From: Lepidodermella squamata
Lineage: Eukaryota; Animalia; Gastrotricha
NCBI GenBank assembly: GCA_047495785.1
Contig: JBLDXI010000006.1
Span: forward strand, 386,438 to 450,437
DNA: 64,000 nucleotides
Direction: 5' to 3'
A program made the translations under genes and the position numbers. The notes under the pieces were generated by a model. That model worked only from the letters and a program-made list of their open reading frames with translations. It made no database searches and was not told where the DNA came from. Below are positions 900 to 62,720 of this stretch, piece by piece; within the stretch, counting starts at the first letter, position 1; each line of letters opens with the position of its first letter.

Positions 900-1841
900 T
901 TAGAGCTTTTTGTAAGACCTCCACGTCCTTCGAGTGGTGGCAGCTTGCCAGTTCGTCGACCAGCCCTGTGTTGAACCGGGATTAGGCGAAGATCCGCGAG
1001 GAGTTGTCGACCAGCCTTGGGTGGACCAGCCCTGTGTTGAACCTGGATTCGGCGAAGAACCGCGAGGAGTTGTCGACCAGCCTTGGGTGGACCAGCCCTG
1101 TGTTGAACCGGGATTAGGCGAGGAACCGCGAGGGGTAGTCGACCAGCCTTGGGTGGACCAGCCCTGTGTTGAACCGGGATTAGACGAGGAACCGCGAGGG
1201 GTAGTCGACCAGCCTTGGGTGGACCAGCCCTGTGTTGAACCGGGATTAGACGAGGAACCGCGAGGGGTAGTCGACCAGCCTTGGGTGGACCAGCCCTGTG
1301 TTGAACCGGGATTAGGCGAAGAACCGCGAGGAGTTGTCGACCAGCCTTGGGTGGACCAGCCCTGTGTTGAACCGGGATTAGGCGAAGAACCGCGAGGGGT
1401 AGTCGACCAGCCTTGGGTTGAACCTGGATTCGAGGAAGAACCGCGAGGGGTAGTCGACCATGGCTTCTGAGTGGTTGAACCGTCAGTCGGCGAGTTCTTC
1501 GTGAAACAGGTGCCTTGTACGCATTGGTCGCCCTCACGGCACGAATGAGTGCCAATGCTCCCGTCACACTTTCCAATTACATAAGCGCCAACATCTTCAT
1601 TCGCCGGTTCTTTAGTGGCGCAGATTCCGCCGACGCATTTGTCATTGGAGAAGCAATCGCTAGTGTACTTGCATCGGCCATAAGTCCAAGCACCCGTTGA
1701 GGAGTAGCAGAGTTTACTGACGCACGGGTCACCGCGTAAGCAGTCGCTGCTAGTTGTACAACTGGCGTAATAGTACTGTGGCCCAGCGCTAACCGAGCCC
1801 AATGCCGCGAAACACAAAACCAAGCCGTTAATTAGATGCAT
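900..1841 (-). CDS. Secreted protein: signal peptide, three 4-Cys modules, Ser/Thr/Trp-rich tandem-repeat tail (313 aa, intronless)
   Basis: N-terminus MHLINGLVLCFAALGSVSA is signal-peptide-like. Modules CTTSSDCLRGDPCVSKLC, CKYTSDCFSNDKCVGGIC, CDGSIGTHSCREGDQCVQGTC, then about 7.5 copies of STQGWSTQGWSTTPRGSS(P/S)NPG. No TM or GPI tail. Confidence 0.85.
   Translation of the reverse strand: MHLINGLVLCFAALGSVSAGPQYYYASCTTSSDCLRGDPCVSKLCYSSTGAWTYGRCKYTSDCFSNDKCVGGICATKEPANEDVGAYVIGKCDGSIGTHSCREGDQCVQGTCFTKNSPTDGSTTQKPWSTTPRGSSSNPGSTQGWSTTPRGSSPNPGSTQGWSTQGWSTTPRGSSPNPGSTQGWSTQGWSTTPRGSSSNPGSTQGWSTQGWSTTPRGSSSNPGSTQGWSTQGWSTTPRGSSPNPGSTQGWSTQGWSTTPRGSSPNPGSTQGWSTQGWSTTPRGSSPNPGSTQGWSTNWQAATTRRTWRSYKKL
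955..1465. repeat. Coding 66-bp tandem repeat (about 7.5 units)
   Basis: cagccctgtgttgaacc recurs at 961, 1027, 1093 and onward with a 66-bp period. Confidence 0.95.
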
Positions 1842-39300: not shown

Positions 39301-40486
39301 TCTCGGTTGTCCGGTCTCAGTTGTCGGATCTGAGTTGTCGTGGTCTCAGTTGTCGGAGTACGCACAAAAGCTCAAAAATCAAAATGTTAAATTTCAAATT
39401 TTTTTAATTTAAATATGTTGAAAATGTGAAAAAACGATAATTAAAATTAATTTTTTATTTTTACCTCTGAAAAACGCGATAACTTGGAGAAGGCTGATTT
39501 CGACGAAGGACGGCTGCCAAGCTTCCATAACGGCGGAAATTTTCGCAATGTGTTCGATTTGATTCTTATGAATCGGGAAGGCCTTCAGGAAAATGCGAAC
39601 CGCTTCGGGCGGCAGGGCGTAGAAGTGATTCAGGCAGGAAGGAAGGGACACTTGAAGGATGACGATGGTGACCAACGATCGTGAGAATAAATGGCACCAG
39701 TCGCTCGTCGGCAGTTGAGGAGCGATGGGTCTTAGAGCTCGAGTGAATTCAACGCCAGCTAGCAGCATTTGTCCAAAGCCGGCCATTATCGCTATCCACA
39801 ACGTCGTATCACTTCAAAAATTATCTCAAAAAATGAGCAAAGGTGAGCAAGGTCATTCCCTATTTTCTAGTAATTTTTCTATTTTTCTATTTTTACCTGA
39901 TTTATTTGCCCAGCTTTAAATAATTAGTGGGTAATTTTACACACTCATTACACACTCGCCCTTGAAATTCAGGTGAATTCTTACATTTAGAATTTTTTTT
40001 ATGAATTTTCGAATTTTTTAAAAAATTTGGAAAAATCTTAAAATAATCAAACAAAAATTGTAAAATTAAAAAAATTAACTCCTGAAATGGCTTGCAGTTC
40101 CATTCGATCGATTCGATAACGGATAATTCGCTTGTAGCTCGCAGCAGTACGACCAGCTGTTGCTCGGTCATGATCGAACCATTGAAGGGAATTTCTTTAA
40201 AAATTGAGCTCGCTTTTCTCTCGTTTTTCGCCGTGACAATAGCGCATTTGGCACACGGGCAAGGTCGAACCAGCTCGTTGCCGTTATCGATGAAATTCGG
40301 TCTCTGGCCGGTAGGCGAGCGTTGATTGAAGTCGTTTATGCACTGCAAGTTGCGCGCCGTGTTCTTATTATTGTAACGGTCGAAAAATTGGCTACATAAC
40401 TTGCACAGGCCGCTCGACTCAGCCTTTGATTGGGCACAAGCTTCACACAGCAAAACAGCAGGATTCGCCACGCAAAACTCTCTCAT
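36332..40486 (-). CDS. Nuclear receptor-like gene 3 (intron 2 expanded by nested transposons)
   Basis: Exons approx. 40486-40081, 39812-39466, 36648-36332. CEAC-x10-CKLC. Exons 2 and 3 are nearly identical to gene 4. Confidence 0.8.
36892..36954. repeat. (TGG)n microsatellite, about 21 units
   Basis: Uninterrupted tgg run adjacent to the left end of the foldback element. Confidence 0.95.
37199..39029. mobile_element. Merlin-like non-autonomous element (middle layer)
   Basis: 8-bp TSD CCAAACTG at 37191-37198 and 39030-39037. Imperfect TIRs GGTTGGGTGACAAATACG and CGGATTTGTCGCCACACC, with tandem cgac subrepeats at both ends. GG termini with an 8-bp TSD suggest Merlin. Confidence 0.75.
37654..38548. 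mobile_element. hAT-like non-autonomous element (inner layer, 895 bp)
   Basis: 8-bp TSD TCCCTAAG at 37646-37653 and 38549-38556. TIR CAGGGTATT/AATACCCTG and subterminal aaaccgg motifs. Confidence 0.88.
39066..39122. repeat. Interstitial telomere-like (CCCTAA)n tract
   Basis: About 9 taaccc units inside the foldback element. A shorter tagggttaggttagggttag lies at 27047-27066. Confidence 0.9.
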
Positions 40487-41179
40487 TCTTAACAAATGTA
40501 ATTTCTAAAAATATTAAAAAAAATTTTAATTGAGAAAATGTAAACGTTCGAGCTATAGGAGGAATTACAGGCAATATATTGTTCTTTGGTGATAATTTTA
40601 GATTTTGGTTGTCATAATTAAACAATGGCCATTGTCGTTAATTCGTCCTATGAGGCTTGCGACAGTCTTGGTGAGGCTTGGGTGAGTGTCTAAAATCAGG
40701 CTCAACGACACAGAACATTTAAAACAAAATTGAAATTACCTATAGCCTGGGTATTTTCCATCGAATGAGATCTTCCCAACTCGTGCTCAGTACAATAAGC
40801 TAAATAACGAGAAATGCATTCGTCCGTGCTATTTGTCGCTATTCAAATTTCTGTCAGCCGCTGACCTAATAATGTGCGAATTTTTGATGGCTAGATCTAG
40901 GTAAATTGATCAAAAACATCGCTAATTATCGTGATGGAAGCATATTTCATCATTCATCCAGGGGTTAACGAGAGGAGAACTTAGTCTTCACTTTGGTTTC
41001 AATGCGCACTCATGCGTGACGGATTGGTATGCAAATATATTGAATCGTTATCGGCTTGTGCCCAATCAAAATTGCGCCATTCAATCACGTGCGAGCACTT
41101 CTCATATTCCCGATCCTCTTCTGATATCGGAAAAATCACTGATTTGTAGAATCGATATTGAAATCGATAGAGAAATGCT

Positions 41180-50994: not shown

Positions 50995-52483
50995 TCATTC
51001 TTCCAGCGGTGGCAGCCCGATCATGCGATATCGCTTCTCGCATTCATCAGCCTCCAGACGATGTAGGTCAATGAAAATGCTGTTCAAATGCATGAGGTCA
51101 GTGCGGTTATTAGCCAACTGCGCGATGACCTCCTTTGAAGCTACGTCAAATTGCGTAACTAGGTCATTGTAAATCAGGTCAAAGAAGTGCTTCCGTAATT
51201 GCGGCGACTTCGCCTGACGTGACCAGTACAAATTTAACGTAGCATAAAGCTCTTGATTTACAGTTTCGACAGCGCAAAGACTTCGTAACTGCCTCTTACT
51301 CGAGCCATTAGCTGATGAAAAAAAGAATTAAGGTGGAATTTTTAAAATGTTTAATTTTACCTCGAAAGAAAACCATAGCTTGTAGAATGCAGAATTCAAA
51401 GTAAGACGGACCCCAAGCCGCCATAGCTGCGGAAATTTTCGAAATCGTCGGAATCAGTTTTTTGTGTGTCGGGAAGAAGTCGATAAATTTTCGCGCAAAA
51501 CTCGGATTCATGCCGAAAAAGTGGTCTTCACACGACGGCAGTGAGCATTGCAAAATTGTTATGGTGACGAAGGAACGCGAAAATAAATGGCACCAGTCGC
51601 TGTTCGGAAGTTTCCGGGCAATCGGCCGTAGCCCGCGGGCATATCCCACCCCAGCTGTCAGCATTTGGCCGAAACATAACATCGAATGACCCCAGGCAGT
51701 TGCATCACTGAAACGAAAATTTAGGAAAATAAATTAAAAAGCGAGGAAATTGCGAAAAATAGACTACCTTAATTTTCTAGCTTTTGAAGAAATGGGATTT
51801 TTTCAAATAAATTTTACCGGTTCATCAGCTTGACGTAAAACTCAAGGTGATTGGAGCATTTTAGCAAAATGCAAAAATATTTAAATTTTGAATTTTAAAT
51901 TAAGTGGATTTTTAAATTTTTTTTAAAAAATCACTGAAAAACATGAAAATTCTCAAAAATTCATAGAAAAATCAGAAATCACAAAAACAACCTATGTTTC
52001 TATTTCTAGAATTTTCCGAGCAAAATCCTAATTTATATAAATTAATTAACAATTTTTGGCTCACTTGGAAAATTTGCCTGGGCCCCAATCGATATTTTCA
52101 ATCAAGGATAATTCGCAAGTTGCACCCATTATCGCTTTGACGTTCCGCTCAGCTAGAATGCCATCTTTATGAACAAGTGCCAGTTCAGACTCGGGTGAAG
52201 ATTGGGCGGATCCTAAGCCATTTGCCAGGCATTTGTTAAGCCAGCATCTTATACAATTCGAGTTGTTGAAATGTATCGAGCAGTTGTAGTAGCCAGTTAC
52301 GCATCGAGCATTTTTACATGAGTTGTATTTATCGAAAAATTCCTGGCAGAATGCACAGTAGATGGTGTAGAAGTCAACCTGGATCGAACAGATGGCACAC
52401 CTGGCTTGAAATTCGCTATCAGGAGTCATCGTCGTTATTTGAGCTGAATAATTCCGCGGCGTTAATATTTTATTCGTTGCCAT
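50995..52483 (-). CDS. Nuclear receptor-like gene 7 (most divergent LBD)
   Basis: CAIC-x10-CAFCQEFFDK..CVTGYYNC..CIRCWLNKCLANGL (compare CRxxKCxxxGM); VGYARGLRPIARKLPNSDWCHLF. Start codon uncertain (52483 or 52429). Confidence 0.8.
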
Positions 52484-53678
52484 CAGGATGAACAAAAAAA
52501 TTGGGCATTTTTAATGAAAACAATCATCATCATCTGCCGTCTGTGAGAACGCAACAATGATCACGAGCCGATGAGTGTCAGTTTTTAGCGAGCTATAGAA
52601 CAAACGAGAGGATGGTCCCCAAGTTTTATCCCGTACAACTCATTTGCGACATCAGACACGCGCGTTCTAACAGGGATAATCAATTAATTGACACATTCGA
52701 CCTATTTCCACGCCGTCTTTACACCTATAAGAGTGTCCTAAGAGCAACTTGATTGATGATGCCCTTGAATTCAAACAAGTCCGTTAACAGTTACATAAAA
52801 AAGTGTCGCCTTTATTATTTTAGAAATTCGAAAAAATAGAAAATAATAAATAATAATATCCGGTCGGGTTGTTAACAGTTTATTAATATCGATTTCCAGG
52901 TGAACTAGGCCAGTGACGCTTGACCAAGTGGTGAGTTAGGATTGTCTTCCAAAGAATTTGCAGAATTCGATTTTTTTGGTCTGAATATTTTGAACCACTA
53001 AACATGTTCTGGCACTGCTAAAATTAATCTTAATTTGTCCGATTCTTTGCGAATTCGGCTTTTTCGTTTGATGATCGATACTGATTTCCTCCTTTTTATC
53101 GATGTCGGATTCCAAGACGGTAGATATCGGAAAAATCACTGATTGGTAGAATCGATACTTGGAGTGCAAGCAGAAGTATAACTCGTAAACTGCGTTGAAT
53201 GGAGATGCATTCCTAGTTTCAGGTCTTCTAGCCTTTCAATGTTGCCGATAAGCCGATAAGCGATAAGCAACTAGTTTGCGAGCTACGTTCATGCCTGTAT
53301 ATCCGATATCGATTCCAATTATCGATTTTACAAATCAGTGATTTTATCGATATTAACTGTCTTGGAAGCCAGCAATTGGAATAGTTCCATACAACTTGGG
53401 GTACTAAAATGAAAAATCCTTATTTTAATTGGCGAACTAATTTTTCAAGGTAGAAATCGTGAAAAGTCCGAACAATTTAACGCTGGAACCTCTATTAAGT
53501 GGGTGGAATTTTTAGCGCAGAGAAATCCGAAACCCCGATGAAATCTTTTATTAAATTTAGTAGAAATTTCTCTTTCAATGATTGGATTCCCTAGAATAGA
53601 ATTGCTTGGAAACTTGAAAGTAGCACCGGGCTCACTTGGTCAAGCGTCACTGGCAGAGGCCTAGCTTCATTGAAAAAA

Positions 53679-54548
53679 CTAATTTTCAGCTGAAAGTTGA
53701 GCGTTAGTCGTTGCTTCAGGAGCTTCTACCGGTGTTATGCGACTAGTTTCTCTCCTGTAATTTTCGCGAGGATTGCGGTCTACGGCCGCTACAACCGGTG
53801 CAGAGATATCGTACCGCCAAAACTCGTAAGCATACGTCAGCAGAAATGCAACTACCAGAAAGGCCATGACCCATTCCGTTGACGTTGAAGTCACGTAGTA
53901 ACTCCATCCAGACGACTGCTCACCCTTCTTCCAGCCGCCATCTGTGAAAGACGATAATTCATTGAAATCGCGCCGTCTCGATGCCATTCTTGCTATGACA
54001 GAGAAAACGACAAAGATAACACCAACCACAAGGTACAAAACCGCAATAACTACGCGTAATATCGCCAGCCAAATTGGTAAAATGTTTTTGATTCGCCATG
54101 TTTTAAACGTCACGATTACAACTTCGATTGCGCAGAATATGACTGGCATGCCGAAGGCGAGTAACGCCCCGGCTCCATGCGCCAATGGCACGGCGGTTGT
54201 TTGGAAATTGGCGACAATGCTGACGCCAAACGCCGCGCTGAGTCCACTAGCGAGTTGAATACGATTGAAAATGACGATCACTCGGCTTTTTTCGCAGATT
54301 TTCAGTTCATTTCGTGTTATGTAGTCGGCGACTTGCCGGTATCGGAAGTAGACTATTGTAGCGAAGAGGACAGCTGCCATGTTGAGCAATTGGCCGAAGA
54401 GACAACTCTCGGGCACTGTTGTACCTGTAGCGCTTATGTAGGGGAATTCAGGGTCGACATGGCCCATGTGGACGGCGAGGATGTAAGTGGCGATGAGGGA
54501 TAGCGGTAGAAAGACAACCAGGGCTATGAGCAGCCATAATAGGCGCAT
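53679..54548 (-). CDS. DRAM/TMEM150 (Frag1/DRAM/Sfk1 family) 6-TM protein, intronless
   Basis: Motifs PYISATGTTVPESCLFGQLLN, YFRY, IVANFQ, HGAGALLAFG, EW; six hydrophobic segments. Confidence 0.9.
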   Translation of the reverse strand: MRLLWLLIALVVFLPLSLIATYILAVHMGHVDPEFPYISATGTTVPESCLFGQLLNMAAVLFATIVYFRYRQVADYITRNELKICEKSRVIVIFNRIQLASGLSAAFGVSIVANFQTTAVPLAHGAGALLAFGMPVIFCAIEVVIVTFKTWRIKNILPIWLAILRVVIAVLYLVVGVIFVVFSVIARMASRRRDFNELSSFTDGGWKKGEQSSGWSYYVTSTSTEWVMAFLVVAFLLTYAYEFWRYDISAPVVAAVDRNPRENYRRETSRITPVEAPEATTNAQLSAEN

Positions 54549-56308
54549 GTTGTAGTATATAGTATAGCAACGCTATAGTACCAGCATAGAGATCAGATTA
54601 ACCAGAGAGGAAACTGATGCAGAAAAAATTCTTTAAACATTAATTTCGCATTATTTTCATTAAAGAGGAATTTAAATATTATTCGCCGCCTTCGAGCTTA
54701 GGGAAAACATCAAATTTAGTCATCAGGTTACTCGAATACATGATTAAAAAGCATACTACATAATTCCTCGTCCCAAAAGTAGGCATACTAGACCTAAAAA
54801 CCGATCGAGATGACAATAAATAGTTTAATGTCAGTTTTCGCGATGTGAAACAAAAATATGCAGGTTCTAGGTCATCGGAAATAATTTGGAATTAAAATTC
54901 CTCCTTAAAAAGCTCGCCGACTTTTTGCAGAAAACTTTTGCATCGAGTTTCCTCTCAGGTTGATCTCTATGAGCACTAGGAAAAAATGCATGCACTGAAT
55001 GATGAAAGATGTATATTACTATTACCTATGCAGCAAACAGTAGTATACCTAGGTCAAAACTGCATTTTTTGCCGTGAGTATATTCAATAAATGGCAGTCG
55101 TGTCATTCATAGTTTCGTGAGTTATTAATGAATGCACCCATGTGTGACCACGCCCGGAATATGAACTATCGCCAAAACAATGACAATCGTCAATAACGAA
55201 ATTTGGTCAAACCATGTCTGACTGAGGTTTTAGAATTCAGTTTGACCTCGAAGGTGCACAGGTGGGCTATGTGATTCATCATCATCTTCCTACAAAAGTT
55301 ACTAGAAACTTGTTTACCCTATTCTGGCAAAAGCTCAACATGTTTGGCTGGATTTGAAATTTTGTGGCGCCCATTATTTGTATATTTCCGTGCAACAAAT
55401 TACCCAATTTAAGAGCACCGACCTTAACGTTTTCAACTAAGTTCTGACCTCACCATGAGAACTCGGGTTTTCATTCGATTTCAGAAAATAGAGACCTAAG
55501 GGGAGAGTATGCCGACTTTTATTTTAATGTATTTCAGCTTCATAAAAACATTAAGGAAGACCCAGAACGATATTATTGCTGATTATTGCTTGCTAATATT
55601 CCTAAAATTCGGTTCTCCTCTACTTTGATTTTAGAGGTCTAACCACGCTGATGAAGTTTACGCGGAAAACATCACTTTTATGCCGCTCAACCCAAAAAAT
55701 CCTTACGTTACCGAACAACTCCTCGAAATTGGAGCTGAGCCATTTGAGAAGAATTTCCATCCGCCACCTTGGCCTCGCCGTCTCTTTATCAGCCGAAGTC
55801 ATGAAAAAGTCGATGGTAATGGGAAATGAATTGTTGTTGGAATAGCGATTTCTGGGTTTTGGTCTTGAAAGGTTGGCTACTTTACCCTTAAAAACCTGTG
55901 CGAAGCTTTGATTTGTGCATCTCTTGCCCCAAATGGACTGATGAGAGAGATAAGAAACTCGATAATGAATTCAGAGTCAAACTGCCAGTCAAGGAGTCAG
56001 GGAGTCAGTAAAGCTTTCCAGATATTTTTAAATTTCGCAGTTAATAGAAGTTAGGTAACCGTAAAAGAGTGTAAATCGATTGTGGCGCTGGCTTATAATA
56101 ACAATTCTACTCGGTTATTCGTAAGGATTTGGGTCACACCTTGCATTGAGTATAGAACAGCGTAGGCAAGTTGAAGTTCGATAATTATCGACTGTTACCA
56201 TGGAACAAAGACCCACCTATGGCCAGTAAATGCCGCTATAGATATCGCACTAAGATTTTTGCTATGCAACACCTATGCCACCTTAATCCCTAACCTAACA
56301 CTTCAATT

Positions 56309-58168
56309 ATGGCTTGGAAATCTCTGGACGTTTGCCACGTGGAACGGGTAATCGCAAGTGGTGATTTCGGGGACGTTTTACTTGTACGAAAGCGTCATGA
56401 CAGACAGCTGTATACTCTCAAGGTGATAGAGAAACTCGATAAGCCAATCGAAGAACTCGGCGATCGAGGCTATATCAATTACATTGAAAGGATGAATGAT
56501 GAAACTGCGCTGCTAGTCGCTCTAAATCATCCTAACATCATTCGAATTTTCGGCAGCTTCCTCGACGGTCAGAAGCGGTATCTAGCTATGGAGTTCTGCG
56601 AGTCAGATTTCGCTAAGGAAATCGCTTTGGCGCGAAATGATCAACGTCGAATTTCGGAGAACAACGTCTACAACTGGACGAAACAAATCGCCTCAGCAAT
56701 AGGTTACATCCATGACGCTGGCGTCATACACGGCAACATAAAACCAAGTGTTAGTTGAAACTGATTCGTAAAGCTAAGTATAAACTGAATTTAAAATTAT
56801 AGAATGTCTTGCTCAAAACCAATGGGAATGACTCGAAAAGATCGCAAATTGTTCGTTTGGCTGATATTCAACTTGGAAATAGGTAATTTTTTCATTCTAC
56901 AGTTTTTACTACTCCAATAACTGGAATCGATAATCTTAATCGATTTTTCCTATAAATGGGTTCTAATCCAAAGCCTTTTTTTAGGCGTTCTTCTGGATTT
57001 GGTACCTTTTTATACTCCGCCCCTGAAATCCTTCGAAAAGAGCCGAGCTCGAAGCACAGCGATATATGGTCATTTGGTTTAACAATCTTTGAATTAGCAA
57101 CTCTGACGCCTATGGTAAGCTCTGCTTTCGAGTGATTTGACTCAGTATCAATCTCTCTTTCCTTAGATTCAAGACGAGGCAACGATTTTAGATGAAATTT
57201 CGTGTTTTGAGTCAGTAACTTCATCTCGGATGGAGCTGAAATCTGCTGGATTGAAGCAAGATCTTGTCGCTTTTCTTGATTCAATCATCAATCCAGCCCC
57301 TGAAAAGCGACCGAAAATCTCCGAAATTCTCAACCATCCCTACCTGAATGACCTTCCTAAGCTGTTTATCAGTTACTGCTCGAAAAATAAGGATCAAGTC
57401 ATAGCCATTCGAGACCGCCTTTTCGACTGGCATTTCGACGTTTGGATGGATGATCAAGCGAATTTAACGGACAGTATGGCTGACGCTATCGAACAGGCAA
57501 GCGTTGTGCTTCTTTGCTACAGCAGCGATTACGCGAAAAGCCGGAATTGCAAGGCTGAGGCTGATTACACCCTGCGACTGGACAAACATTTCATCCCGCT
57601 GAAGGTTCAGTCGAGCTACGAACCGAGAGGCTGGCTTGGCATCATGATCGGCAACTCAACAATACAAGATTTCAGCGAAAAGTCGAACTTTGAAGAATCT
57701 TTTGATCGACTAGTCGGTTTTTTTAGGAAGATCGGGCGATACCCCTTAAAATCATCTCGAACGTTTTCATCAATGAGACGAGAGAAATCAATCCTGTCAG
57801 GTGGACGAAAGTCTGGAACTTTCGTGAAAAGCGTAACTTTGTTAACAGGCGATGATGACGATAGAGACGAAGATGAGGAGGAACAAGAGTTGACTCGACT
57901 TGGCCCGACGCCAAAAATAACGAAAATCACGCAAGGACCTGGGTTTATAATGGCGCAAATGCCGCGTGTTGAAATCGGCGCTAGGTCGCAACTTCGGTCG
58001 GAATTCGCGAGAGGTTCGCGACTCGAACGGACCTTACTTGGGCCGAAACTTGAAGATGCCCTGATACCACCTTACGGCAAGTTCGGAGTGATTAAAACTA
58101 CTTCGAAAACATTACCGCCAGTATGGATACAGCGTAAAATGAAAACACTCAATGACTTGAAGCAATAA
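56309..58168 (+). CDS. Pseudokinase-TIR fusion protein, 550 aa (exons 56309-56749, 56803-56882, 56985-57114, 57167-58168)
   Basis: Spliced kinase fold: IASGDFGDV, YTLK, LNHPNII, HGNIKPS|NVLL, LADIQ, GTFLYSAPE, SDIWSFG, PEKRP. Directly followed by a TIR_2-like domain LFISY..VWMD..MADAIEQASVVLLCYSSDYAKSRNCKAEADY..IPL..GWLG. All three GT-AG introns keep the frame. Confidence 0.92.
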
Positions 58169-60860
58169 AATTGTTGTTCCTTAAATTAAATGGAGAGTTA
58201 GTCGTATATAGTATCATATGCGTTGTATTCAACAGTTTTCGATTCATATTCAGCCGCGTTGCAGTCGGACACGCATCCGTAGTCACAATGTGCAGGTGTC
58301 AATCCGCATCGACCTTGAAACAGAGAAAACAGTTTTTACCCTCAAAATCCCAATGAACCGAGTCTATACGTTATGTTAAGGTCTTAGGACTTTTGGGAAA
58401 GTTGTGAAATTGGAAAAGTCACGATTCCCAGTGTGCGAAGTACGGAGAGGGGGACGGGTGACAGGGGGTACCCGCACTTTAAAAGGTCCAGGTAAGAAAA
58501 CCCAATAACCTCTGGGGGAACCCTTGGTTCAGATGAAAAATACCCACTTACTACCACCTCAAGGATCCTATACTTAATCGATTGCATATTTCGGAACAAT
58601 TTAGATCCATAACATTTGGGATGTGCCCATGGACACCCTTCCAACGTCAAAAACAAGAAATTCCTGGGATTGATGCCGAGAAGCTATTCCATTTGAATTA
58701 TATGAATGTGATTTGAATGTTACCGTATTGGCTGCAACAGTAGCCATTTTGACAAGGCTGCCCTTCGCCACATTCTCTGTTTACATCCTTAGCGTCGCAC
58801 TTGCTTTGACAGCCCGAGCCGCAATGAGCCTCCGTGTACCCGCAGTAGCCTATTAAAATGTTCAAAAATTACTGTAGTTTGAAAAATCTCTTCTAGCGAG
58901 TGTGTCCCTGGATAAAGGAAACTTTTAGAGGAATTAGGATCTTGGCCAACAATCTAGTAAAGTTGTAGGCTATTTTTTCGAATTACCGTACTTGCTGCAA
59001 CACGCCTGCGGACACGGCCGGCTAGATGAACAAGTGGTGTCATCGGAAGAATCAACTAAAAGGCTGTTGGAAGCAAAAGCCAACAGCAGGAAAAACACTC
59101 TTTTAGGAAACATAATTCAAACGATTTTATCTCGCAGACAACTTAAACAGCCGGTACTATTCTGTGATTAAAAATTCCTAAAACGTTTCTTCCATGGAAG
59201 CATATACATATGATCACATCCTCTTATGTAATTCAGTTATAATCATTAATTTCATCCCCTCGTGAAACACATAAAAAGACTATGGCAACGATTGTGTGGG
59301 ATTTGCGGATGATTTAGCAGATTGAACCCTAGACAACTTACTCGTGCTACGCCATTGACGCCAGAAGGTCAGTAGATTCATAAGTGATTGGAAGTCAATA
59401 AAAAAATATTCGATTATTTTTTTGCTGGTTTCGAGACCGTTCCGATTTTCCCGCGTTTGATTGATGGATTCAGAAAGAGGTTTCGAAACGGTTTGATTGA
59501 ATATTGAAGATTGAAGCTATCTAGGCGAAAGTTGATATTTGAACCCTAAATTCAGCCTTGGTTATCGTAAGGATTTCCTACAGGCAAACAAATCGAAAAT
59601 GATGTTCACCTTACCTCCAAGCACTGATGAATGATCTGATCTCTCATGGTGTAGTACCCGTTTACTCGCGAATAAACAGTCTACAGTAAATTATGTCTAG
59701 GATTCAATCTGCTAAATCATCCGCAAATCCCACACAATCGTTGCCATAGTCTTTTTATGTGTTTCACGAGGGGATGAAATTAATGATTATAACTGAATTA
59801 CATAAGAGGATGTGATCATATGTATATGCTTCCATGGAAGAAACGTTTTAGGAATTTTTAATCACAGAATAGTACCGGCTGTTTAAGTTGTCTGCGAGAT
59901 AAAATCGTTTGAATTATGTTTCCTAAAAGAGTGTTTTTCCTGCTGTTGGCTTTTGCTTCCAACAGCCTTTTAGTTGATTCTTCCGATGACACCACTTGTT
60001 CATCTAGCCGGCCGTGTCCGCAGGCGTGTTGCAGCAAGTACGGTAATTCGAAAAAATAGCCTACAACTTTACTAGATTGTTGGCCAAGATCCTAATTCCT
60101 CTAAAAGTTTCCTTTATCCAGGGACACACTCGCTAGAAGAGATTTTTCAAACTACAGTAATTTTTGAACATTTTAATAGGCTACTGCGGGTACACGGAGG
60201 CTCATTGCGGCTCGGGCTGTCAAAGCAAGTGCGACGCTAAGGATGTAAACAGAGAATGTGGCGAAGGGCAGCCTTGTCAAAATGGCTACTGTTGCAGCCA
60301 ATACGGTAACATTCAAATCACATTCATATAATTCAAATGGAATAGCTTCTCGGCATCAATCCCAGGAATTTCTTGTTTTTGACGTTGGAAGGGTGTCCAT
60401 GGGCACATCCCAAATGTTATGGATCTAAATTGTTCCGAAATATGCAATCGATTAAGTATAGGATCCTTGAGGTGGTAGTAAGTGGGTATTTTTCATCTGA
60501 ACCAAGGGTTCCCCCAGAGGTTATTGGGTTTTCTTACCTGGACCTTTTAAAGTGCGGGTACCCCCTGTCACCCGTCCCCCTCTCCGTACTTCGCACACTG
60601 GGAATCGTGACTTTTCCAATTTCACAACTTTCCCAAAAGTCCTAAGACCTTAACATAACGTATAGACTCGGTTCATTGGGATTTTGAGGGTAAAAACTGT
60701 TTTCTCTGTTTCAAGGTCGATGCGGATTGACACCTGCACATTGTGACTACGGATGCGTGTCCGACTGCAACGCGGCTGAATATGAATCGAAAACTGTTGA
60801 ATACAACGCATATGATACTATATACGACTAACTCTCCATTTAATTTAAGGAACAACAATT

Positions 60861-62720
60861 TTATTGCTTCAAGTCATTGAGTGTTTTCATTTTACGCTGT
60901 ATCCATACTGGCGGTAATGTTTTCGAAGTAGTTTTAATCACTCCGAACTTGCCGTAAGGTGGTATCAGGGCATCTTCAAGTTTCGGCCCAAGTAAGGTCC
61001 GTTCGAGTCGCGAACCTCTCGCGAATTCCGACCGAAGTTGCGACCTAGCGCCGATTTCAACACGCGGCATTTGCGCCATTATAAACCCAGGTCCTTGCGT
61101 GATTTTCGTTATTTTTGGCGTCGGGCCAAGTCGAGTCAACTCTTGTTCCTCCTCATCTTCGTCTCTATCGTCATCATCGCCTGTTAACAAAGTTACGCTT
61201 TTCACGAAAGTTCCAGACTTTCGTCCACCTGACAGGATTGATTTCTCTCGTCTCATTGATGAAAACGTTCGAGATGATTTTAAGGGGTATCGCCCGATCT
61301 TCCTAAAAAAACCGACTAGTCGATCAAAAGATTCTTCAAAGTTCGACTTTTCGCTGAAATCTTGTATTGTTGAGTTGCCGATCATGATGCCAAGCCAGCC
61401 TCTCGGTTCGTAGCTCGACTGAACCTTCAGCGGGATGAAATGTTTGTCCAGTCGCAGGGTGTAATCAGCCTCAGCCTTGCAATTCCGGCTTTTCGCGTAA
61501 TCGCTGCTGTAGCAAAGAAGCACAACGCTTGCCTGTTCGATAGCGTCAGCCATACTGTCCGTTAAATTCGCTTGATCATCCATCCAAACGTCGAAATGCC
61601 AGTCGAAAAGGCGGTCTCGAATGGCTATGACTTGATCCTTATTTTTCGAGCAGTAACTGATAAACAGCTTAGGAAGGTCATTCAGGTAGGGATGGTTGAG
61701 AATTTCGGAGATTTTCGGTCGCTTTTCAGGGGCTGGATTGATGATTGAATCAAGAAAAGCGACAAGATCTTGCTTCAATCCAGCAGATTTCAGCTCCATC
61801 CGAGATGAAGTTACTGACTCAAAACACGAAATTTCATCTAAAATCGTTGCCTCGTCTTGAATCTAAGGAAAGAGAGATTGATACTGAGTCAAATCACTCG
61901 AAAGCAGAGCTTACCATAGGCGTCAGAGTTGCTAATTCAAAGATTGTTAAACCAAATGACCATATATCGCTGTGCTTCGAGCTCGGCTCTTTTCGAAGGA
62001 TTTCAGGGGCGGAGTATAAAAAGGTACCAAATCCAGAAGAACGCCTAAAAAAAGGCTTTGGATTAGAACCCATTTATAGGAAAAATCGATTAAGATTATC
62101 GATTCCAGTTATTGGAGTAGTAAAAACTGTAGAATGAAAAAATTACCTATTTCCAAGTTGAATATCAGCCAAACGAACAATTTGCGATCTTTTCGAGTCA
62201 TTCCCATTGGTTTTGAGCAAGACATTCTATAATTTTAAATTCAGTTTATACTTAGCTTTACGAATCAGTTTCAACTAACACTTGGTTTTATGTTGCCGTG
62301 TATGACGCCAGCGTCATGGATGTAACCTATTGCTGAGGCGATTTGTTTCGTCCAGTTGTAGACGTTGTTCTCCGAAATTCGACGTTGATCATTTCGCGCC
62401 AAAGCGATTTCCTTAGCGAAATCTGACTCGCAGAACTCCATAGCTAGATACCGCTTCTGACCGTCGAGGAAGCTGCCGAAAATTCGAATGATGTTAGGAT
62501 GATTTAGAGCGACTAGCAGCGCAGTTTCATCATTCATCCTTTCAATGTAATTGATATAGCCTCGATCGCCGAGTTCTTCGATTGGCTTATCGAGTTTCTC
62601 TATCACCTTGAGAGTATACAGCTGTCTGTCATGACGCTTTCGTACAAGTAAAACGTCCCCGAAATCACCACTTGCGATTACCCGTTCCACGTGGCAAACG
62701 TCCAGAGATTTCCAAGCCAT
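60861..62720 (-). CDS. Second, identical copy of the pseudokinase-TIR gene (exons 62720-62280, 62226-62147, 62044-61915, 61862-60861)
   Basis: Mirror image of 56309-58168 with identical translations in the ORF track. Confidence 0.9.

Follow-up and report, generated by a model that had tools for sequence, protein, structure and literature searches.

The window analysed here, a stretch of 64,000 nucleotides from the gastrotrich Lepidodermella squamata (contig JBLDXI010000006.1, positions 386,438 to 450,437), contains on its + strand (56309-58168) a real, spliced and transcribed gene for a single-chain protein, hereafter pseudokinase-TIR, in which a kinase-like domain is followed by a TIR domain. 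The coding sequence of 1653 nucleotides encodes 550 residues plus the stop codon, and the fused protein is almost certainly made. As judged from its domains, pseudokinase-TIR adds a further shuffled combination to a large family of invertebrate TIR proteins, parallel to the Kinase TIRs of choanoflagellates.

Gene structure and transcripts

An earlier reading of the window from its letters, here called the sequence-only reading, had proposed that four exons are spliced into one protein of 550 residues. This proposal was borne out both by the open spliced coding sequence and by complementary DNA (cDNA)-like contigs of a public run, X1, which skip all three introns, and the motifs named in that reading were all found in the translation where it had located them. 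The gene is organized as follows:

56309-56749, + strand: exon 1, residues 1-147, N-lobe of the kinase and on into the catalytic loop; donor GTTAGT; joined to exon 2 by a cDNA contig
56803-56882, + strand: exon 2, residues 148-174, with N148 and DIQ 168-170 (56863-56871); X1 contig on 56806-56883
56985-57114, + strand: exon 3, residues 174-217, activation segment, APE 186-188 and DIWSFG 200-205; joint 57113>57166
57167-58168, + strand: exon 4, residues 218-550 and stop, C-terminal helices of the kinase (to residue 277), linker, TIR and tail
57365-57715, + strand: TIR_2 domain, residues 284-400; codon of Glu348 at 57557-57559; shortened BB loop DDQANL at 57449-57466

The introns are 53, 102 and 52 nucleotides long, and 3/3 are bounded by GT..AG. 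To test splicing, contigs of X1, a run of 2015 whose label "RNA?" is a guess and whose contigs are short, were placed on positions 55900-58500, where their coverage extends from about 56150 to about 58335. The GT..AG joint of intron 3 (57113>57166) was present in these contigs, and their overhangs at 57114 and 57166 continue into exon 4 and exon 3, respectively. In a contig of 104 nucleotides, the complete exon 2 is flanked by the final 14 letters of exon 1 and by the beginning of exon 3, and the depth of X1 is lower in introns 1 and 2. Contigs devoid of introns must derive from cDNA, whatever the guessed label. Joints reported in X1 as connecting opposite strands were set aside as contig-building artefacts. 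The X1 contigs are 90-99% identical to the window, those used for the test of splicing about 95-97%, and the run probably comes from a close relative or from another strain. A different public run, X2, carries the whole stretch with 100% identity, and the assembly was probably made from it.

The C-terminal end of the kinase domain, a linker of six residues and the TIR domain all sit within the single unbroken exon 4, and therefore the fusion is independent of any splice. This arrangement does not fit with the possibility, raised in the sequence-only reading, that kinase and TIR exons belong to separate transcripts. Inspection of the 550 residues by eye revealed no signal peptide, hydrophobic N-terminus or transmembrane stretch, and a cytosolic location is the best explanation.

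Twelve differences between X1 and the window were listed, namely 7 synonymous changes and 5 conservative replacements, and several of them lie in the C-terminal tail. The synonymous bias provides modest evidence for purifying selection on the gene. The number of listed insertions or deletions inside the coding sequence is 0, which suggests that the short BB loop of the TIR domain is also present in the close relative.

The kinase-like domain and the TIR domain

The Pfam model Pkinase (PF00069, cut-off 31.7 bits) matched exon 1 (1.2e-22, 81.1 bits) and exon 3 (7e-9, 35.9 bits), and residues 28-60 of exon 4 match the last 33 positions of the profile (231-263); matches above the cut-off span both the N- and the C-lobe. 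The domain departs from an ordinary protein kinase at three motifs. The glycine loop ASGDFG (16-21) has its first Gly replaced by Ala, a paralogue in the same genome having ASGGFA; the catalytic Asp of HRD is lost in the HGN motif (141-143; 56729-56737), which aligns with the HKD/HRD of CDPK and with the HRD of paralogues from the same genome; and DFG has become DIQ (168-170), in which the Asp stays and the Phe and Gly are gone. The replacement of the HRD Asp by Asn is what usually defines a pseudokinase by sequence. The residues that are kept comprise K38 (the beta-3 Lys of VAIK; 56420-56422), E65 (the alphaC Glu; 56501-56503), the catalytic-loop residues K145 and N148, and D168 (the DFG Asp), together with the motifs APE (186-188) and DIWSFG (200-205). 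Thus, the claim that the domain had lost its catalytic machinery stands for the HRD Asp and for the Phe and Gly of DFG, but it was too strongly worded in view of the conserved K38, E65, N148 and D168. Since these four residues are the ones that hold ATP and Mg, the domain is probably a nucleotide-binding pseudokinase and not a gutted one, and it is likely to be dead for phosphotransfer.

The N-lobe aligned to CDPK, PKA and Aurora A with E values of 1e-14 to 1e-11, and the closest kinase types are CAMK, AGC, Aurora and NEK. On these alignments the domain is classified as a derived NEK/Aurora-like Ser/Thr kinase. A close paralogue of the domain was not found in the L. squamata genome. The nearest kinases of that genome, a cluster on contig C57, are 28-35% identical to the domain, keep HRD and have DLG instead of DFG; in the PDB, NEK1, NEK2 and Aurora are their closest matches. 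This NEK/Aurora-like kinase gene cluster lies at C57:30-44 kb (loci L023, L024 and L029), and L029 reads HRH for HRD.

The kept residues could alternatively be those of an atypical active kinase whose TIR would serve for recruitment only, as if IRAK and MyD88 were combined in one chain. In agreement with this idea, K38, E65, K145, N148, D168 and APE are all in place, some HxN kinases such as JAK2 JH2 and HER3 keep weak activity, and choanoflagellate and metagenomic kinase-TIR proteins exist. Nevertheless, the Asp that acts as catalytic base is Asn and DFG is DIQ in pseudokinase-TIR, whereas its nearest paralogues keep HRD and DLG. The features of an IRAK/Pelle-MyD88 module are missing as well, because the protein is devoid of a Death domain and its kinase, with best matches to CAMK, AGC, Aurora and NEK, is not a TKL-group IRAK. 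An active kinase of this kind is therefore quite improbable. For the choanoflagellate Kinase TIRs, such a combination of kinase and recruiting TIR was proposed by Richter et al. 2018 (PMC6040629).

The Pfam model TIR_2 (PF13676) matched residues 67-183 of exon 4 (3.2e-19, 70.1 bits; cut-off 28), beginning six residues after the end of Pkinase; the two Pfam domains expected from the sequence-only reading were both recovered, and the classical TIR model (PF01582) gave no match in the protein. The domain carries the TIR motifs FISY (284-287) and SRNCKAE (342-348). An AlphaFold2 model of the TIR, built on an alignment with eight paralogues from the same genome, was confident (predicted local distance difference test score, 87.4; predicted template modelling score, 0.84) and places E348 in helix alphaC (model helix 66-77). 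When the model was compared by Foldseek with known structures, it matched plant RPS4 and RUN1, SARM1, the SPARTA TIR-APAZ protein, Hydra TRR-2 and MyD88 about equally, with a probability of 1.0 for many TIR structures, among them those of RPS4, SARM1, SPARTA and MyD88, and the structure of the SARM1 G601P mutant was among the matches. Comparison with the SARM1 TIR, which the sequence-only reading had put forward as a check, thus agreed at the level of the fold; however, enzymes and the MyD88 scaffold were matched alike, and therefore the fold cannot separate an enzyme from a scaffold.

A phmmer search of the TIR against PDB sequences yielded no TIR match. When a profile of the paralogues was compared with the PDB, the best matches were Cat1, RPS4 and Roq1, and the Glu of the NC(K/R)xE motif aligns with their catalytic Glu. 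This alignment and the position of E348 in alphaC bear out the Glu named in the sequence-only reading. The description of the domain as an enzymatic-type TIR, however, has the Glu as its one ground and is weakened: in a family alignment of 174 TIR domains this residue is the default, present in 97% of them. E348 is kept in pseudokinase-TIR, and the family-invariant and core TIR residues are retained there too.

An exhaustive search returned 2983 TIR relatives at E<=0.001, none of them above about 50% identity, and the nearest named ones are from a tunicate, an amphioxus, an annelid, bivalves and a hemichordate. Nearly all of these relatives are ARM-TIR or ARM-TIR-SAM proteins, like the paralogues in the same genome. 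On this basis the TIR is assigned to a widespread invertebrate ARM-TIR(-SAM) family. The L. squamata genome encodes at least ten ARM-TIR(-SAM) paralogues with a TIR identity of about 45%, and the TIR of pseudokinase-TIR is likely to stem from this family. Paralogues of the ARM-TIR-SAM type form tandem clusters (L003-L011) at C19:1.08-1.14 Mb, C33:1.138-1.142 Mb, C20:0.755-0.760 Mb and C55:1.842 Mb. In pseudokinase-TIR the kinase domain occupies the position of the ARM repeats of the paralogues and database relatives; ARM and SAM are absent, and only the TIR shares membership of the ARM-TIR-SAM family. No kinase was found within 1.5 kb of 18 other TIR loci of the genome, nor around a further 5 that were covered to a distance of about 5 kb; a Pkinase scan of the genome, in which 121/1104 candidates were scored, did not list the pseudokinase-TIR gene itself.

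Related kinase-TIR proteins and genomic surroundings

The sequence-only reading did not recognise the architecture as a characterised one, but kinase and TIR domains have been found combined before, as indicated by the Kinase TIRs of Richter et al. 2018, by a TIR plus PKinase protein of Rotaria and by the kinases present in 2/150 of the nearest TIR relatives. Richter et al. 2018 (eLife, PMC6040629) defined choanoflagellate "Kinase TLRs" and "Kinase TIRs", the latter having Pkinase plus TIR and no transmembrane segment; in their data set both were confined to choanoflagellates, and they were uncharacterised (PMC6040629). Pseudokinase-TIR has the architecture of a Kinase TIR, that is, Pkinase and TIR in one chain and, by eye, no transmembrane segment, and it shares with the choanoflagellate proteins the location of the kinase N-terminal of TIR_2.

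The two kinase-bearing proteins among the 150 nearest TIR relatives are P0008, of metagenomic origin, with a Tyr/TKL-type kinase and two TIRs, and P0015, with an ANF receptor, a kinase and two TIRs, whose cluster includes a protein of Bicosta minor. Their TIRs are 36-37% identical to that of pseudokinase-TIR and lie nearby in a weakly supported tree. In contrast, their kinases belong to the Tyr/TKL type (PF07714, 9e-77) and are barely similar to the pseudokinase domain (E 1.5e-4), and their two TIRs follow a longer linker, whereas pseudokinase-TIR is an animal gene with an HGN pseudokinase. In the tree, calculated from 174 rows and 143 columns, no supported clade contains pseudokinase-TIR; it groups with the kinase-TIR proteins on long branches and with a support of 42-56% in the Shimodaira-Hasegawa-like approximate likelihood ratio test, a grouping that may be due to long-branch attraction. 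It is more likely, though not certain, that the animal fusion arose independently of the choanoflagellate Kinase TIRs.

Hurieva et al. 2026 (bioRxiv 10.64898/2026.04.20.719644) reported that, outside the TLR and IL-1R clades, the Glu is retained in most animal TIRs, and that many Glu-bearing non-TLR animal TIRs make cyclic ADP-ribose (cADPR) in E. coli. By inspection, the consensus of our 174 TIRs matches sequences printed in that work, and the TIR was assigned in this way to the ARM/TPR-TIR(-SAM) cluster (representative A0A0B7AZE4), with which it shares the TIR_2 signature FISY..., W.D, MA.A.E, C.S..Y..S.NC..EA.Y, P...Y.P.GWLG. The proteins of this cluster have TIRs 37-48% identical to that of pseudokinase-TIR and keep the Glu, but pseudokinase-TIR differs from them in having a kinase-like domain in place of ARM, no SAM, a BB-loop deletion of 3 residues and a long branch. 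Active neighbouring clusters include TIRs of Magallana, Latimeria and Clupea (Hurieva 2026, Table S4), and the cluster itself is hugely expanded in rotifers according to Table S2 (Hurieva 2026). One rotifer protein in that table, A0A818MJ69 of Rotaria sp., is also an animal protein of the same TIR cluster in which the Glu is present and a kinase is joined. It differs in the order of its domains, the TIR (30-155) preceding the kinase (205-503), and, known as a table row alone, it may be a merged gene model. A phrase search of the supplements of Hurieva 2026, with 2 of the 12 PKinase rows covered, returned no further PKinase architectures.

The pseudokinase-TIR gene is found twice in the window, in the two arms of an inverted repeat (55042-59335 and 59694-63986; 4.29 kb), which are identical except at their extreme ends and in which the gene copies are arranged tail to tail:

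60861-62720, - strand: second copy of the gene, 100% identical, carried by the right arm
59336-59693, no strand: centre of the inverted repeat, 358 nucleotides; dispersed repeat resembling a miniature inverted-repeat transposable element (MITE), with inverted ends of about 140 nucleotides

The right arm ends 14 nucleotides before the end of contig C6. Positions 59344-59480 and 59586-59706 match a dispersed repeat family with dozens of copies at 74-85% identity, and copies elsewhere in the genome are often inverted pairs about 750 nucleotides apart, which accounts for the MITE-like look with inverted ends. The second copy is probably a fold-back artefact of reading or assembly seeded at the hairpin, and a single gene was counted, although the structure may instead be a very recent real palindrome.

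The inverted repeat also duplicates a multi-exon gene (58300-59113, - strand, mirrored on the + strand from about 59916) that is convergent with the pseudokinase-TIR gene and encodes a secreted Cys-rich protein with a hevein-type Chitin_bind_1 domain (2.8e-8). Hevein-type chitin-binding domains are better known in plants and fungi. Farther away, a single-exon gene (53679-54548, - strand) encodes a membrane protein of the DRAM/Frag1 family (PF10277) with 38% identity to DRAM proteins of arthropods, molluscs and nematodes, which points to a bilaterian-like animal host of a sparsely sampled lineage; an aldo-keto reductase was uninformative in this respect, with its best match on metagenome contigs. 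The N-terminus of two open reading frames (39902-40495 and 52061-52495, both on the - strand) is rich in Cys and recalls a degenerate zinc finger of nuclear receptors, and Pfam returned nothing for either of them at E<=0.01. Finally, positions 900-1841 (- strand) encode a Cys-rich secreted protein, and a long tandem repeat of the STQGWSTTPRGSSxNPG type with a mucin-like look comes after it.

Possible functions of pseudokinase-TIR

In the mechanism that we propose, the kinase domain, located in the place of ARM and six residues before the TIR, would be a switch for TIR-TIR assembly that binds a nucleotide or a partner, and the output would pass through the TIR, most likely as nicotinamide adenine dinucleotide (NAD+) processing, that is, a cADPR-type signal or NAD+ depletion. 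A role of the kinase domain as regulator is suggested by analogy with the SARM1 ARM domain and with pseudokinase switches. SARM1, TIR-1 and dSarm also have a regulatory domain N-terminal of a Glu-bearing TIR, the ARM domain of SARM1 senses a nucleotide, and the fold of the SARM1 TIR matches the pseudokinase-TIR model in Foldseek with template modelling scores of 0.63-0.73. SARM1 differs in its ARM-SAM-SAM-TIR order, in its TIR subfamily and in its SAM octamer ring, which pseudokinase-TIR does not have; it was not matched by sequence search, and pseudokinase-TIR does not have the features of a SARM1 orthologue. A dead kinase fold is the switch or scaffold beside an immune or death effector in MLKL, in RKS1/ZED1 with ZAR1, in JAK JH2 and in the IRAK2/IRAK3 of the Myddosome. 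JAK JH2 shares the HGN catalytic loop with pseudokinase-TIR, whereas none of these proteins is known to have a TIR in the same chain, and the kinase of pseudokinase-TIR is NEK/Aurora/CAMK-like instead of RIPK-, RLCK-, JAK- or IRAK-like and is not accompanied by a Death domain.

Output through NAD+ processing is favoured because Glu348 and the family core residues survive on a fast-evolving branch. We hold activity of the TIR as an enzyme in vivo, as predicted from these residues, to be only a little less probable than inactivity, and cleavage of NAD+ by this particular TIR is somewhat doubtful. Oligomerisation gating, NADase output and a role in cell death are steps that we purely infer, an immune or cell-death role being evenly balanced and suggested by family association only. 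The complete chain, from a pseudokinase switch to the gating of a NAD+-processing TIR, is put forward tentatively as the leading explanation, although it is less probable than not. In a more specific version, a nucleotide-binding pseudokinase would have replaced, in an animal and independently, the ARM sensor of a SARM-like ARM-TIR protein, and in the resulting single-chain switch ATP/ADP or a partner bound to the dead kinase would gate Glu348-dependent NAD+ processing; this version is unlikely.

Several observations weigh against a pseudokinase-gated enzyme. Three BB-loop residues present in 98% of the 174 family TIRs are absent from pseudokinase-TIR, which also has an Ala in the BB loop where 82% have Gly, and both the deletion and the change from Gly to Ala are unique to it within the family sampled. 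In known TIR enzymes, the head-to-tail composite active site is built by the BB loop. The terminal branch of the TIR measures 0.87 in the 174-row tree, compared with a median of 0.3. Neither SAM nor another oligomerisation domain was found by Pfam or by comparing the tail with the paralogues, and the C-terminal tail of 145 residues has no Pfam domain and no similarity to the paralogues. The word-indexed and exhaustive TIR searches found no orthologue outside one close relative, on which any judgement of conservation depends; the word-indexed protein search with exon 4 gave no match, which argues that there is no orthologue of 183-583 residues sharing words with that exon, and a feature search of the ESM Atlas gave no usable match. 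Finally, four isolated TIRs of the same cluster, from Chlamydomonas, Branchiostoma, Lepisosteus and Phallusia, were not flagged as active (Hurieva 2026, Table S4), although this is weak evidence because the controls RUN1, RPS4 and RPP1 were likewise negative in the cADPR assay (Hurieva 2026, Table S4).

Modulation is favoured by the BB-loop deletion, by the missing SAM and by these negative family assays. Pseudokinase-TIR would then be a non-catalytic cap, decoy or adaptor that binds to ARM-TIR-SAM paralogues or to further TIR proteins of this TIR-rich genome. Its truncated BB loop and its lack of SAM would keep it from assembling an enzyme of its own, and the pseudokinase would offer a regulated or partner-binding surface. 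In this respect, the TIR of RRS1 restrains RPS4, and dominant-negative forms of SARM1 provide a second analogy. The long branch and the equally good match of the MyD88 scaffold TIR are consistent with such a function, as are the ten or more ARM-TIR(-SAM) paralogues of the genome with their TIR identity of about 45%, which are possible partners of the protein. Nevertheless, Glu348 and its NCKAE context have survived fast divergence, although about 3% of the family lost the Glu (the LEU entries), and among TIRs with reported activity, for example that of Magallana, the BB loops differ in length and the Gly is variable (Hurieva 2026, Table S4). A non-catalytic modulator is only slightly less probable than the pseudokinase-gated enzyme.

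The gene could also be a young chimera with little or no function, a by-product of TIR domain shuffling that is transcribed but drifting. The finding of the orthologue in one close relative only, the long branch, the degraded motifs in both domains and the tail without a recognised domain would agree with such an origin. However, the frame of 550 codons is intact over four exons and is spliced and expressed in the relative, the differences show a synonymous bias, and both domains retain the residues of their core fold, which makes a drifting gene improbable.

TIR domains are now regarded as enzymes in bacteria, plants and many animals, and to our knowledge the restraint of their activity is understood in few architectures only, among them the SARM1 ARM domain, plant nucleotide-binding leucine-rich repeat receptors and the Thoeris and SPARTA partners. 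For now, pseudokinase-TIR is a bench candidate rather than a discovery, its catalytic competence being in real doubt. Invertebrate TIR repertoires shuffle domains freely, which makes any single combination less of a surprise, and pseudokinase-TIR is known from one lineage. A compact protein of 550 residues with a six-residue kinase-TIR junction would nevertheless lend itself to the question of whether TIR assembly can be gated by a pseudokinase. If the proposed swap of the ARM sensor were true, pseudokinase-TIR would be the first pseudokinase-controlled TIR enzyme, and its short BB loop would imply a different assembly geometry. In addition, the gene indicates that fusions of kinase and TIR, choanoflagellate-specific in their 2018 description, also arise in animals.

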